Shown: piece by piece, positions 16,591 through 26,348 of the stretch
How the letters are laid out: the number at the start of each line of letters is the position of its first letter
Numbering within the stretch: position 1 is the stretch's first letter
NCBI RefSeq assembly: GCF_048593235.1
Contig: NC_133622.1
Location: 250,360,055 to 250,424,054 of the forward strand
Direction: 5' to 3'
Length of the DNA stretch: 64,000 nucleotides
Source of the DNA: Sminthopsis crassicaudata
Taxonomy: Eukaryota
Position numbers and translations under genes: made by a program
Notes under the pieces: generated by a model
What the model saw: only the letters and a program-made list of their open reading frames with translations
Databases searched by the model: none
What the model was told of the DNA's origin: nothing

Positions 16591-17941
16591 CAGCTTTTAA
16601 AACAAAACCTCCACCTTCTAACAATTACAACACTGAGCCCCTGCTGGGGAAGAGAAAGTCCTTACTGAGGTGGCTAATGATTGCTTCTCGCCTCTGGCCT
16701 GGGCACACAGGGCAGCCATCTCTGTGCACAAGAGCGAGACATGTACCAGCCAGTGACGCGACCTGGCTCCCGGCCCTCTCCCCCTGCATCCCTTCTGGAT
16801 TCATGGTACGTTTCACTGCGGGCCAAGATGCACTTCGGGGCTGGCTTTATTCCTGCCCAACAGGGGCGTGTCTGCAGTGCAGACAGACCTGTCCGTGCGG
16901 AGTCTCACATGATTGGAGAGGCAGGAGATGGCACGAGCTGGGCCTGGGAACCAGCGCTGGTGCCTCCAGACATCCCTGCAGCCCAGCCTCGGCACATCCT
17001 CCTCTTGATCTGAAGCTGGGTTTTCGCCAGAGACCACACTCTGATTCACCAAACTATAAGCCGGATTAAAATATAACTGGAAAACATTTTACAGGATAAA
17101 GTAAATCATCAATACTCATCATTTAGGTCCATCTGTTTGACTCCCGGGCCAAGGCTGAGCCCACAAGGTCGTCAGGAAGGGCAAGCAGTGCCACCTGGTG
17201 GTCAGTGGGAGACTTCTAATCGCCTCACCCTCCTTTGTGCTTCTGGGACACGACCAGCCGGGTCTTCCTCTCTGCAGACCTTCCCCTGGACAGGTCATCT
17301 AAGAGGGGTGATTCACCTTGACCTAACACATCTGTCCCATCACTTTACAAACTGTCTCTTCAAAAGGAAGCAGCAGGGGATGGTCCTGGAGGAGAGCACA
17401 ACGCCATCTCCCATGTGCCTCCCAGGAACAACAGGGCCCTCCCCGCCACAGGAAAGCTGGTGGGGACTATGGGAAAGGAAGGTTGAGGACAGGGAGACAG
17501 AATGAGAAGAATGAGAGCTGGAGGAAGCAGTGCTGTGCAACAGGGGGTGGCGGGGGCCCCACTCCACCCCCCAGCTCCCTTCCCCAACAGCCTGCTTCCT
17601 GTCACCTCTGCATCTTCCAGCCGCCACCTTAATTCTTCCTGGCTAAAACCTGGGAAAGAGCCAATGAGGCACCTCAAGAAATCCAAAGACACCCGGATGC
17701 GCCCGACCGCTGTCCACACGGCCGCTAAGAAACGGCAGTCCTCAACGACACCCCCATCCCCGCAGCCTGCCGGGTGCCCACAGGGCACAGGGACCCAGGG
17801 GGCTCAGAGGGCAAATGCCAGTGCCCCGCAGGAGTAGGGCAGACAACAAGGGCGGTCTAGAGTGCTAGAAAGGGGTGAACAAAGAAGGAACACTATGTAC
17901 AGGGAGGGGGCGATCCAGTCCAAATATCCTCTTCATCCACC

Positions 17942-20900
17942 TCACTCCACCAGGAGATCGAACTTCTCGGCAGCCTCAAACTGGGCGTTCATGGCGGCGG
18001 CCCACTCATCCAGCTCTGACTTCTGCAAGGATGAGAGGGGGTGGGTGAGCGGGGGGAGACAGCCAACGGCCCTTCCCCCCCAAGCCGAGCGGCTGTTTCA
18101 GACACTTCAGACAGAAGGTGAAAGAAAGGAGATGTGGGTAGTTCTTGGAGGACCCCGATCTGGAAGAATGAGGCCCTCAGGGCTCCTGCCTGCCCAGAGA
18201 TCACGGAGTGGGAGCAGAGAGGAGCCTCATTGTAAAGTGCCCGGACATCAGGGAGGGACAAGAGCTCTAGCAGCAGGTGAGCACAGCCCAGCACAAGAAA
18301 ACCATGAGAAAAGGGAAAGGCCTCAGGGTGAGAGAGGAGCGTTCCATTGGGAGGAAAGGAAGGAGTGCCAGGCTCCCGTGGTCTGACTGACTAGCAGAAG
18401 GGGGCAGAAACGGCCCCCCCAAAGCTTTCCTTGGGACTGGAGATGAGCCAGGAGACAGAGCCCTTCACAAGGACCCCGGGTCCCTTGCAGACAAAGGCAG
18501 AATAAGGCCCAGGAGAACGTGGCGGCCGAGGCTGGCGTGAGATGCCTTCGTTTCGGCAGAGGCGGGGGACTACGGCTACAGCAGGTGAACAGGCCAAGCC
18601 TGGTCATGTTGGACTTTTGGGTTTCTGTGTCAAACCACATTCAGAAAGGCTCGACTTTGCTTCCTGGCAAAATCCAGAGCACGTAAAAAAGGGGAGGTTT
18701 GTGGGCACTGGGAACGGGAAGCCGAGACTACAAGGAGCCAGCGGGGCTTCGTCAAGCAGGGGTCCCACCAGCTTCGCCTTCGAGCTGTGGGACCGGGTAA
18801 ATGCCCGAGTACAGAATGGACAAGGCCTTCCATGAGGACTGGATGACCATAGTGCCCTCGAGTCATCCCCTTGTCAAAGGGTCAACAGCTAGACAACCTC
18901 AGGGTGGCGAGGGCCCAGGAGCCCTCGCTGGCACCCCCTCCCCCCCATGGTTTATCAGCAATCCGGATGAAGGCAGAGGGACAGGAGTAGCAGATGGGGG
19001 GATGGGCTAGCTGGTGCCATAGCTAACATGATGGATGTCTGAAGTAGGATCCAAAAAGGCTGAAAGGGGCTGCAAAGAAATGCAAAACCCCTCCTGGGGG
19101 TCGCTGAGCCGAGCCCCACAAAATGGGGAGTGTGTGAGCTCGGCGTCAGTTAAAGGGGAGACGCGGTAGCCAGGATGCTAACAAGAGTGTAAGTGGCAGG
19201 CAGACATTCAGCAGGAGGGAAGAGATTCCCACCATCCTCTGCCTGGTCAGATTCCCCATTCAGGGACGGGGGGAACCTCACTTTGAACCTCACTTTAAGG
19301 ACCCTGCCAAGTGAATTCTGTCTCCAGGTGGGTGTCTGACAGACCAGAGCCCCCAACTGCCTGATCCAAGGGACAGCAAAGATCTGACTAGAGCAGAGGA
19401 GGCGGCCGAGCTGAGCCCCCTCCCGGCACTGTCGTTTAGACCAAGGCTGGACGGTACCACAGGGAAGCTCGGTGCAAGGAGACTCGTGGGAATCAGAGCT
19501 GCCCGTTTAGAAGGGGTAGGGAGAGGTGCAGCGTCTGCCTCCGGCTCACAGGGCGTCAGCCGACAAGCTGGGGGAAGTGCTCACCAAGATCTCGGGCACC
19601 TTCCTCTTCCGGCGCTTCTCCTTGGTCATGGGGATGCCGGGGAGGATGGAGTCCGGCCCCCAGGCCTCCGTGCTGGGGGCGGCTGCTGGGTGTTTCGACT
19701 CCTTCACCACCGGGGAGACGTTCTCCAGCTCCTCTCCCGAGAGCAGCCTCTCAAAGCCAAAGAAGGACCGGCGCTGGTAGTTGGGTGTCGAGGTGGAGCC
19801 CAAGCCCAGCTCGTCGAGGCGGCTGTAAGAACGCCGAACCTTCCTGGACATCTCCAGGTCTCTGGCATCCATGAGAGGTGGCCTGGCGACGGCATTGGGG
19901 GTCAGAGGGCCTAACACTGTGGGGGTCACTTCTGGAGCTGGGCCCGTGGCGAGAGAAGAGCCGCCTTTATGGAGGGGGACATTTTCCTGCAGAGGGGGCG
20001 AGTTCTCCTTCTCCGAAAGTGTGACCTGTAGGAGGAAGTCAGAGGCAGAGGAAAGGGAAAAGCATGGGGAAGGGCTCTGCAGACATGGGCCCCTCCCCCC
20101 CAGCACCTGGTTCTCCGGCCTAGCACCTACATGTGGGCGGTCCTGACACTGCTTTCCTTGCCACCACCTCCCCGCACCCTTGGTTTCCATGACCACCACA
20201 AAATCCCCACTGTCTAAAGTCTCCCGGGTCTCTGCCTCGATGCACTGCGGACACCAACCCTTCTGCCCAACCCCGTTCCCGAGGCCCTGCTCCCAAGGCT
20301 GGGCCGCCCATACACGGCGCAGAGTACGGACGGAAAGCTCCCCGAAGGAGTCTCGCTGTGGGGAGTCCGGAGAGGCCCCGTGTAGAGGGAGAAAACCGAG
20401 AGGCAGAAGTGAACCAAGCGAGGCCGGAGCCCGGCTCCAGGTTAGTTCACGGGGGACGGTTAGTGTAAGAAAACTGGGGGGACAAGAAGGGCTTGGGAGG
20501 CCAAAGAGAGCGAGAGAATGCGGCTGGAGCCCCGTGAGCAGGGCCTGGGTGCACCCGTGTCCCCCAACTAAGTGCCTGGGGGGCCTCAGCCTCTGACTCC
20601 TTGAGGGGAGGGAGGACGGGGGCAGAGACGTCAGCCTGGCTGAGTCCAAGCCCGTGGTGTTTCCCTGACTCTGCTGTCTACACAACAACGTGCAAACAAT
20701 CAGGGCACTTGAGCCTTTTACTGCCCCCCCATTTCCCCCCAAGGGATTCATACCCTACCCCAGCTAGATAGGGGCCTCCCTACCTACTATTCTCAGCCCG
20801 CCCAACTTCAAGCGTGAACCACCCGCCCGTCACTGGGAAGGCCCTCGTGGCCTCCGACTGAAAACCATTGCTCCTGCCTTCAGACTTCTCCCGGCACTCT

Positions 20901-23326
20901 GCCAACCCCCCCAGACTGTGGACCCCCTCCTTTGCATCTGGCCGGAAGCTCGGGGGAGCCAGGTCCGGCTCCACAGGCCTGCTTAAGCTGATGCTTGTGT
21001 CTCGGATGCCCCGGCCCCGACTCCCCTCTGTCCCACCCACGACACCCGTTTGACAGAAAGCGCTCGCTGGACTCTCACGTTCCCGGCTCCCGGTCTCTGC
21101 TGGGGGCACGAGGCGCAGGGTGGCGACGAAAATAGAACAAAGGTTCCTTCCACGCGCCAGAGTGACGTCGTGGAAGGCCCGACCTTCCCTGAGACGTAAA
21201 CCCGCGGCCTCACCTCTGCAGACAGGGACGCCTTCTTCTTGGCTGCGGACCGGCCTCCTCGGGGGCTGGGACTCTGGGACTGAGAGAAGACAGAGGTGAA
21301 GGAAGGCCGGGAGCCGGGGGGAGGATGGGGACTGCGGCCCCCTCTCCCTCACGGAGACGACCCCCGGGCTGCAGGAAAAGCCCACAGAGAAGAGGCTCCC
21401 GAGAGGGAGAGCGTCTCTGCTTAAGCCTCTGGGCGTCTTCCGGCACCCACAGCTCAGCAGAGTCTCCTCGGTCAGAGGCCGCCGCCGCCGCCTTAGGATT
21501 CACGAGAAACGTGGACCGGGCGTCCGTGGTTTTGTCCCCGTGGCAGCAGTGAGAGGGAGGCGCCGCTAGCGTCCCCGTGGGGGGGAGGGGCAGAAGTGGA
21601 CAAACAACAAGCGGCTTTCCTAGGACCGCACAAAGGGGAGGGGGGGCGCCGCTACGCTTGAACTTGGGCCTTTGTTGTTCTGCTTAACCGCCCGTTGCCG
21701 TGGGGGAAGGGGAAAGAAGCGGAGAGCGGTGGGACAGACCACTGGACTTGGGAAGGGGGGGGGCTCACCTCCTGGGTCCTGGCCACCAGCTTCTTCACCG
21801 AGATGGCTCTCCCGGCTACAGCGGGGGCGGCCTGAGGGAGAAGATCATCAGAGACTGGTTCCGAGGCGGAGGGAACGAGTCAGGGCCACGGGGAAGGAGG
21901 CTCACCTCAGGGGTCCGGGGCTCACTCCTCTCTGCGGGAATCTGGGGGCTGCTTCTCTTAGCCCGGGAGCCGGGCACGCCCTTGTCGGTGGGAGCCCCAG
22001 GAGCGCTCTTCCCTGCGGGGGTCTGGGGCGCACTCCTCTCCACAGGAGTCTGGGGCGCACTCCTCTTGGCTGGGATGGACTTCTGGATTCTGGGGGAGGG
22101 GGCCTAGCCCAGAGAAGGATGAGGAGAGGTATCAGCAGCAGAAGGGCAGAGGGGATTGTGGGGGGAGGGGCTGAGGGTGCAGTCTGTCTCACCTCGGGGG
22201 TCCGGGGCGCACTCCTCTCTGCGGGAATCTGGGGGCTGCTTCTCTTAGCCCGGGAGCTGGGCGCGCCCTTGTCGGTGGGAGCCCCAGGAGCGCTCTTCCC
22301 TGCGGGGGTCTGGGGCGCACTCCTCTTGGCTGGGATGCGGGACTCACTCCTCTCTGCGGGGGTCTGGGGAGCACTCCTCTCTGCAGGGGTCTGGGGCGCC
22401 TTCCTCTCTGCGGGGGTCTGGGGAGCACTCCTCTTGGCTGGGATGCGGGACGCACTCCTCTCTGCGGGGGTCTGGGGAGCACTCCTCTCTGCAGGGGTCT
22501 GGGGCGCCTTCCTCTCTGCGGGGGTCTGGGGAGCACTCCTCTTGGCTGGGATGCGGGACTCACTCCTCTCTGCGGGGGTCTGGGGAGCACTCCTCTTGGC
22601 TGGGATGCGGGACGCACTCCTCTCTGCGGGGGTCTGGGGAGCACTCCTCTTGGCTGGGATGCGGGACTCACTCCTCTCTGTGGGGGTCTGGGGAGCACTC
22701 CTCTTGGCTGGGATGGACTTCTGGATTCTGGGGGAGGGGGCCTAGCCCAGAGAAGGATGAGGAGAGGTATCAGCAGCAGAAGGGCAAAGGGGATTGTGGG
22801 GGAGGGGCTGAGGGTGCAGTCTGTCTCACCTCGGGGGTCCGGGGCGCACTCCCCTTCGCCGCTGGAGGCCCGGGCCCTATCTTCTTCAGGGAGAAGGTTT
22901 TCCAGGGGGCAGGCGTGGAAGGCTGGAACAAGGCAGGCGAGGTCAAAGGTCATCTTTAGGGCAAGGTGGAGCTGGGGAAGGGGGGGCGGGGTCTCCCCAG
23001 GACTGATCCATAGGCTGGAAAAGGGCTCACCTGGGGAGGGGCGTCAGGCTCCGATCCGGACTTCCGCTGGGACCTCCTCAGAGCCGGAGCCCGAAGGGGC
23101 GGGGACGCGGGGTCTGAGGAGGGAATGGGGGGGTGATTAATAGGAGGCCAGGCTCCAGCCGGGCCGCCCCGCCCCCGCTGCCCCGCCCCCAGCCCTCGGC
23201 CCGCGCTCGCTCGCCCCCTCCGCCCCCGCCCCGGGTCCTTCCCTCACCGGAGCGTCTCGCCCCACCCCCTCCTCGCTCTCCCGCGGCCCCGGAGCGGCTG
23301 TGGCTCCGGTTCCGTCTCGCCGACAT
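17942..23326 (-). CDS. CDCA5: Sororin (cell division cycle associated 5), predicted about 550 aa with repeat-expanded N-terminus
   Basis: Exons 23248-23326 (MSARRNRS..), 23031-23113 (LRRSQRKSGSE), 22830-22922, 22193-22741, 21906-22103, 21769-21831 (RAISVKKLVA), 21214-21279 (uncertain), 19585-20025 (KEN box, RRSYSRL, RRSFFGF, KRKVPEIL), 17942-18022 (KSELDEWAAAMNAQFEAAEKFDLLVE*). Head-to-head with ZFPL1 as in human. Confidence 0.92.
21906..22103 (-). CDS. CDCA5: CDCA5 extra exon, short paralog of 22193-22741 (66 aa)
   Basis: Same acceptor, donor GAG|gtgagc; 198 nt, phase 0-0. APSPRIQKSIPAKRSAPQTPVERSAPQTPAGKSAPGAPTDKGVPGSRAKRSSPQIPAERSEPRTPE. Confidence 0.75.
22193..22741 (-). CDS. CDCA5: CDCA5 extra exon made of twenty 27-bp units (183 aa)
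   Basis: Polypyrimidine acceptor ctctcctcatccttctctgggctag and donor GAG|gtgaga; 549 nt, phase 0-0, no stop codons. Reads APSPRIQKS followed by IPAKRSAPQ, TPAERSAPQ and TPAERSESR-type units, ending TPE. Confidence 0.75.
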
Positions 23327-23383
23327 CTCAAGCCGCTCGCGCGCCGACGGAAAACCGCCTTCAGCGGAGAAGAGCGCGGAACG

Positions 23384-23410
23384 TTCGAATACCCCGCCAA
23401 TCCGGAAGTG
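23384..23410 (-). promoter_or_regulatory. CDE/CHR element with CCAAT box and ETS site in the CDCA5/ZFPL1 bidirectional promoter
   Basis: Minus strand ATTGGCGG-GGTA-TTCGAA: CDE TGGCGG, 4-nt spacer, CHR variant TTCGAA; ccggaagt adjacent at 23402-23409. Confidence 0.6.

Positions 23411-23840: not shown

Positions 23841-26348
<2,508 letters not shown>

Follow-up and report, generated by a model that had tools for sequence, protein, structure and literature searches.

How did sororin, a small, essential and mostly disordered cohesion regulator, come to nearly double its length in one natural lineage, upstream of every known motif, and does the added tract matter to the protein? The question is raised by the CDCA5 gene of the fat-tailed dunnart, Sminthopsis crassicaudata, which lies on the minus strand of the stretch of DNA analysed here (contig NC_133622.1, positions 250,360,055 to 250,424,054; 64,000 nucleotides (nt), referred to as the window, whose own numbering is used throughout). 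An original prediction, made from this sequence, had placed in CDCA5 two exons built from a coding 27-nt minisatellite and had proposed that the encoded repeats could retune the multisite phosphorylation of sororin. We find that the host gene of the repeat is a nine-exon CDCA5 and that both repeat exons are spliced into mRNA to give a protein of 550 amino acids (aa) as against ~300, with inclusion of the longer exon read from where the junction contigs end. Taken as a whole, we judge it probable that the locus represents an expressed dasyurid expansion of CDCA5, duplicated as a module in the dunnart, that would act as a tolerated and weakly constrained spacer.

The array occupies two exons, RA (22741-22193; 549 nt, 183 aa) and RB (22103-21906; 198 nt, 66 aa), both on the minus strand like every CDCA5 feature given below, which lie between exon E3 (22922-22830, 93 nt) and exon E4 (21831-21769, 63 nt; AAPAVAGRAISVKKLVARTQE). 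The introns separating these four exons are short, with 88 nt between E3 and RA (22742-22829), 89 nt between RA and RB (22104-22192) and 74 nt between RB and E4 (21832-21905). Both repeat exons have an acceptor with a pyrimidine tract that ends in ...ctgggctag/G (the slash marks the splice site) and a GAG/gtgag donor, are stop-free in the frame fixed by the upstream exons E1-E3 and, like every exon from the end of E2 onward, are phase 0-0, and RA exceeds RB by 351 nt, which is 13 x 27. The positions, lengths, acceptors and donors first proposed for the two exons were borne out by the minus-strand sequence, and sequence and frame analysis likewise upheld a phase 0-0 structure, a stop-free CDCA5 frame and a difference of 13 units.

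Within RA, the head APSPRIQKS is followed by 15 homogenised 27-nt units, a degenerate four-unit tail and a closing TPE, and RB has the head and tail of RA around only 2 core units. The units read IPAKRSAPQ, TPAERSAPQ, TPAERSESR/ASR and TPAERKAPQ. The homogenised core (22293-22715, minus strand) has a basic period of 27 nt, on which higher-order periods of 54 and 108 nt are superimposed, and Tandem Repeats Finder reports it at a period of 54 with 7.8 copies, 88% matches, 0% indels and a score of 671. As expected of a coding minisatellite, all units are 27 nt long, a multiple of 3, and stand head to tail without frame-breaking indels. A four-unit block of 108 nt occurs repeatedly inside RA, which points to recent turnover of the array. 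We discounted the open reading frame (ORF) itself as evidence for coding, because in such a GC-rich repeat a second sense frame of RA and RB is likewise stop-free and an antisense ORF is equally open; exon status is instead assigned from RNA splice joints and from identity to the RefSeq protein. The antisense ORF, 357 aa long, spans the whole array (21672-22745, plus strand) and is most likely a by-product of the stop-poor, GC-rich repeat. A stronger-looking acceptor 14 nt into the exon (cccccag/A) was also rejected, as it would frameshift into a stop and the RNA joints use TAG/G.

Evidence for splicing comes from Logan contigs of four runs (X1, X5, X6 and X8) mapped onto positions 17900-23400. 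X1 shows no splicing, resembles DNA or unspliced material and is unusable as a copy-number baseline. In the RNA runs X5, X6 and X8, canonical GT..AG joints (CT..AC on the plus strand) are found at every model intron, among them joints at the RA donor at 22193 and at the acceptor at 22103. All three runs contain the RB>E4 joint (21906>21831), and RB looks constitutive because this joint is as deep as the E5-E4 joint next to it (40.3 vs 41.8 in X5; 14.6 vs 14.6 in X8). No E3>E4 joint, in which 22830 would be spliced directly to 21831 and both repeat exons skipped, was seen in the RNA contigs of X5, X6 and X8.

The three junctions foreseen from the sequence (22830>22741, 22193>22103 and 21906>21831) are thus confirmed in their coordinates by RNA joints, with the first two interchangeable in placement because the junction contig is short. 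This contig, which leads from a donor into the repeat head, was placed as E3>RA in X5, as E3>RB in X6 and as RA>RB in X8, and the three placements are equivalent. In each run its upstream side measures 24 letters, or 23 once the cut offset of +1 is applied, and 23 letters is the exact stretch common to the E3 and RA donors ahead of their divergence. A contig that stops at the divergence point, given de Bruijn assembly, indicates that both donors precede the repeat head; the reported side lengths therefore imply that both E3 and RA are joined to it, and an RA-type donor joined to the repeat head means that RA is included and that the transcript holds two tandem repeat exons. Read depth says little about RA inclusion, as repeat words inflate depth, bins average over holes and the contigs are too short to span the array.

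That RA and RB truly are part of CDCA5, as had been proposed, is established by these joints and by the spliced model product, whose 550 aa are identical to NCBI XP_074129563.1 and XP_074129564.1, "sororin [Sminthopsis crassicaudata]". As RefSeq and UniProt already contain these long proteins, the gene model is not new; in the library searched, no paper named both sororin and marsupials. The remaining exons are E1 (23326-23248), which begins at the ATG, E2 (23113-23031), E5 (21279-21214, 66 nt), E6 (20025-19585, 441 nt) and a last coding exon (18022-17942) with the stop codon at 17942-17944. E1, E2 and E5 are supported by translation and by RNA joints, which also include 22922>23031 at E3 and 18022>19585 at the last exon. 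E6 matches Pfam Sororin_middle (PF09666, 2.7e-9), and the last exon, which carries the Sororin box, matches Sororin_C at 17945-18022 (PF25220, 3.4e-11, 43.3 bits vs a cut-off of 27.4). The translation of E6 opens with the KEN box motif SEKENSPP, a candidate APC/C-Cdh1 degron, and continues with a YSR motif (MSRKVRRSYSRL, including RRSYSRL, with R at the consensus K/Q position), the FGF motif SFFGFERL and the basic patch KEKRRKRK. These motifs agree with the consensus features of vertebrate sororins, namely a YSR motif of the form [M/W]S[K/Q]KVRRSYSRL, an FGF motif of the form [S/T]-hydrophobic-FGFExL and a basic stretch ahead of the box (PMC10656103). Translation and Pfam matches thereby confirm that the KEN, YSR, FGF and C-terminal motifs downstream of the array are intact.

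The runs also carry sequence variants. At 21950, X6 and X8 show T>C on the plus strand, so that codon 52 of RB reads GGC (Gly) in place of AGC (Ser); Gly is also what the Tasmanian devil has at the corresponding tail position (SRPKRSGPQ). In X6, 5 other letters stand in place of 56 nt of the E5-E6 intron (20560-20617), an intronic indel polymorphism. Runs X5, X21 and X22, filed under other organism labels (B and D), contain a near-identical locus or near-identical RA words; X5 (organism B) matches the window without mismatches, and the runs of organism A show single-nucleotide polymorphisms. The differing labels may be synonyms, subspecies or close congeners.

The distribution of the expansion was examined in orthologues that E6 recovered in a HMMER scan, extended by a second search. 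In the devil, two CDCA5 records with identical flanks, UniProt A0A7N4PVH9 (642 aa) and UniParc UPI00062BF059 (582 aa), both contain an in-frame array orthologous to that of the dunnart. The devil array forms one block, of 24.3 and 25.3 units in the two records, which may stem from different assemblies, and the dunnart array comprises 20.3 + 7.3 units, so that unit number differs between the two species while the frame is kept. At the position of the array, wombat, koala, tammar, Dromiciops and opossum have a single exon of 16-21 aa that has not expanded; that of the wombat reads ATSPGAQKSIAVKKIVAQTPE, koala, tammar and opossum have comparable 21-aa exons, and that of Dromiciops reads VSSPAVQKRAGPQTPE. 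In the eutherian sequences fetched, the RKPIVLKKIV-type motif occurs once and a repeat tract is absent. A search with the repeat region matched only the dunnart protein and the two devil proteins, a result that is not informative on other dasyurids. The expansion is thus common to two dasyurid genera and absent from the five non-dasyurid marsupials and the eutherians sampled, in keeping with the lineage-specific origin first suggested. The accompanying claim that copy number varies stands for the comparison between dunnart and devil; within a species it comes to one unit between two devil records that possibly represent different assemblies.

Set beside eutherian and non-dasyurid sororins (human, 252 aa; wombat and opossum), the dunnart protein shares the gene, the ZFPL1 neighbourhood, the KEN, YSR and FGF motifs, the basic patch, the Sororin box and disorder, and differs by an insertion of 249 residues, made of 9-aa repeats, that separates the N-terminal exons from the KKLV-motif exon. 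With the devil protein it has in common an in-frame array, a corresponding head (APSSGVQKS in the devil), the core units IPAKRSAPQ and TPAERSAPQ and a homologous degenerate tail. The differences are that the devil has one uninterrupted block whereas the dunnart has two exons, by way of an extra exon-plus-intron duplication, and that ...SESR and ...SASR unit variants have evolved in the dunnart.

The source of the array can be read from the wombat, whose DNA contains three tandem 63-nt exons (L001:2121-2183, 2267-2329 and 2403-2465). Introns of 83 and 73 nt lie between them, all three have GAG/gtgag donors, and pairwise identity among the exons is 63-73%. It is the middle wombat exon that the first 63 nt of RB most resemble, at 48/63 positions as against 36 and 40 for the others, and dunnart E4, a paralogue of the ancestral repeat exon, is identical to the third wombat exon at 53/63 positions. 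The 27-nt unit corresponds to codons 10-18 of the ancestral exon, with IAVKKIVAQ in the wombat giving IPAKRSAPQ, and the hydrophobic KKIV signature was lost during unit amplification. Within the dunnart, the E3-to-RA and RA-to-RB introns, the second a duplicate of the first, are only 1 mismatch and 1 single-base indel apart, E3 ends in the same 23 nt and donor as RA, and the tails of RA and RB differ at 4/117 nt (3 nonsynonymous, 1 synonymous). The near-identical introns, common 23-nt exon end and similar tails point to the recent duplication, by unequal exchange, of an exon-plus-intron module. In outline, one of three tandem symmetrical 63-nt exons expanded internally by amplification of its middle 27 nt, likely through slippage or unequal exchange; the array was present before the dunnart and devil lines split; and in the dunnart line a further unequal exchange duplicated a module of exon tail, ~89-nt intron and exon head to produce RA and RB.

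More generally, this part of marsupial CDCA5 (21769-22922; L001:2121-2465) is a small array of tandem symmetrical 63-nt exons and micro-introns of 73-89 nt. The exons end in TPE or TTE and carry a K-x-I-x-V-K-K-I/L-V motif, and their number is about 4-5 in the opossum and 3 in the wombat, with one such motif in the eutherian sequences fetched. Dunnart E3 has 93 nt vs 63 nt in the wombat, and its extra tail (22830-22860, minus strand) is repeat-like: PPAAKGSAPRTPE. By its sequence, this tail suggests that gene conversion or unequal exchange reached into E3, because the final 23 nt of E3 and the whole next intron match those of RA. In the devil, the repeat-like tail of E3 is longer still.

What might the tract do in the protein? 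The insert (residues 86-334) comprises 249 aa and 26 kDa of a protein with a calculated mass of about 58 kDa (about 32 kDa if the tract is left out), with a net charge of +29 and an isoelectric point of about 11.7; it is made up of Pro (20%), Ala (17%), Ser (14%) and Arg (13%) above all, and has zero Leu, Phe, Trp, Tyr, Met, Cys, His and Asn. This composition indicates a disordered basic tract. The insert precedes all known functional motifs and sits in the N-terminal half of the protein, which is poorly conserved. Its non-homogenised tail is identical between devil and dunnart at 26/39 residues (67%) vs 92% for E6; weak constraint is suggested by this divergence, by the mostly nonsynonymous differences between the RA and RB tails and by the Ser>Gly polymorphism in RB. 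Sororins are mostly unstructured and poorly conserved beyond the box, FGF and YSR motifs (PMC10656103), and residues 223-252 of human sororin are necessary and sufficient (PMC12976308). We therefore favor a reading in which frame and splice phase would be maintained because the essential motifs downstream require translation, with the residues themselves only weakly constrained. The tract would most likely be a tolerated basic spacer and not a tuned regulatory module, and such a spacer may lend the protein non-specific affinity for chromatin and some sites for proline-directed or basophilic kinases.

Two observations weigh against this reading and lead to different alternatives. One is that in X8 the tail of RA has a binned depth near that of an intron, as would be expected if RA, and possibly RB in some tissues, were a mainly skipped cassette and the main protein were 367 aa (RB only) or shorter. 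All exons of the repeat block are symmetrical, so that skipping any one of them preserves the frame, and alternative use has parallels: in tammar RefSeq, variant X2 includes the orthologous 63-nt exon and X5/X6 (variant names, unrelated to our runs) lack exactly those 21 aa, and a devil-like record (P0001) joins E3 directly to E6. The placement of the junction contig as E3>RB in run X6 could be taken the same way, but the 23 shared nt leave E3>RB, RA>RB and E3>RA indistinguishable in that contig, and its end at the divergence point implies that the RA donor is joined to the repeat head in all three runs. The RA-specific contig of X5 (22210-22326) is moreover exon-like in depth, at 29.4 vs 7 for the adjoining unspliced intron contig, and RA words are fully present in runs poor in intron words (X12 and X14 contain 0.38 and 0.31 of the 3.9-kb locus, with an exon share of ~0.40, and their share of RA words is 0.55-0.69, with a maximum of 0.72 across all runs). 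RefSeq, too, has only the full-inclusion protein for the dunnart, from two transcripts. That RA is a cassette exon is plausible; that it is mainly skipped we regard as improbable. Far less credible is that the array or the RA/RB duplication arose in assembly. Tandem repeats and near-identical modules are prone to misassembly and the two devil records do differ by one unit, but words specific to RA and to RB recur with no or few mismatches in independent RNA runs from several studies, the transcript joint from an RA-type donor to the repeat head needs tandem repeat exons, and the devil has an orthologous array. On these grounds we rejected an assembly artefact, which the original prediction had itself raised.

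The other observation is that dunnart and devil share an identical IPAKRSAPQ unit and both have TPAERSAPQ, though the flanking tail has diverged by a third, which could mean selection on the core units instead of neutrality. The repeat tract might then be an adaptive module in which CDK1 and Aurora B, or else MAPK-type kinases, phosphorylate the S/T-P and K-R-S sites during mitosis, with an altered threshold or timing of sororin release from cohesin or chromatin, and phosphorylation by Cdk1 and Aurora B is indeed known to switch sororin off (PMC10656103; PMC12976308). Our recount returned the same 18 S/T-P and 9 KRS motifs in 249 aa as reported before, and candidate sites are denser in the tract than in the other 301 aa (S/T-P, 18 vs 10; P-x-S/T-P, 14 vs 4; [KR]-x-[ST], 11 vs 8), with the core unit conserved across two dasyurid genera. 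On inspection, however, the motif basis of such tuning appears weaker than first stated, as 0/18 S/T-P sites have the full CDK consensus S/T-P-x-K/R. Of the [KR]-x-[ST] motifs, 7/11 have Ala or a hydrophobic residue at +1. The critical sites of human sororin adjoin its Pds5-binding motifs, and the decisive Aurora B site, S145, lies within the YSR motif, distant from the tract; human fragments 1-149 and 1-222, which cover the N-terminal half, do not block chromosome-arm resolution even if tethered to chromatin (PMC12976308). Tail units and paralogous copies vary freely at nonsynonymous sites, and non-dasyurid marsupials and eutherians do without the tract. An adaptive phosphorylation module thus seems unlikely to us. 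Slightly less likely still is the fuller version of this idea, in which the tract would be a gained basic, multiply phosphorylatable arm with charge-switchable affinity for chromatin or DNA, array length, which may differ among individuals, would set the timing of prophase cohesin release and IPAKRSAPQ would be under selection. A tolerated spacer remains the reading we prefer.

Coding variable number tandem repeats (VNTRs) in disordered regions are familiar, and among them the PER3 54-bp VNTR and the KSP repeats of neurofilament-H have had length polymorphism and phosphorylation shown experimentally. The dunnart array resembles these in being an in-frame minisatellite in a disordered region, with predicted Ser/Thr-Pro or basophilic kinase motifs and a copy number that differs between species; it differs in its setting, among micro-exons that form a tandemly duplicated family. 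In practical terms the yield is modest, with the model already in RefSeq and UniProt, and we regard the array as a real, tidy and moderately interesting lineage-specific variant of a known protein whose functional interpretation is speculative. The expansion nonetheless shows the extent of N-terminal change that sororin tolerates, and the locus is a clean case of tandem duplication at two scales, that of 27-nt units and that of exon-plus-intron modules. If the tract matters, the dunnart, the devil and other marsupials offer a natural length series for the effects of charge and phosphorylation outside the binding motifs on cohesin release.

Beyond CDCA5 itself, a ZFPL1-like gene starts at 23883 on the plus strand, head-to-head with CDCA5 and 556 bp from ATG to ATG, and this arrangement suggests a common bidirectional GC-rich promoter. 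In the wombat, ZFPL1 occupies the same head-to-head position. Just past the first coding stretch of the ZFPL1-like gene, a GC-rich tandem repeat of 84 nt is present at 23995-24172, with 2.1 copies and 92% matches.

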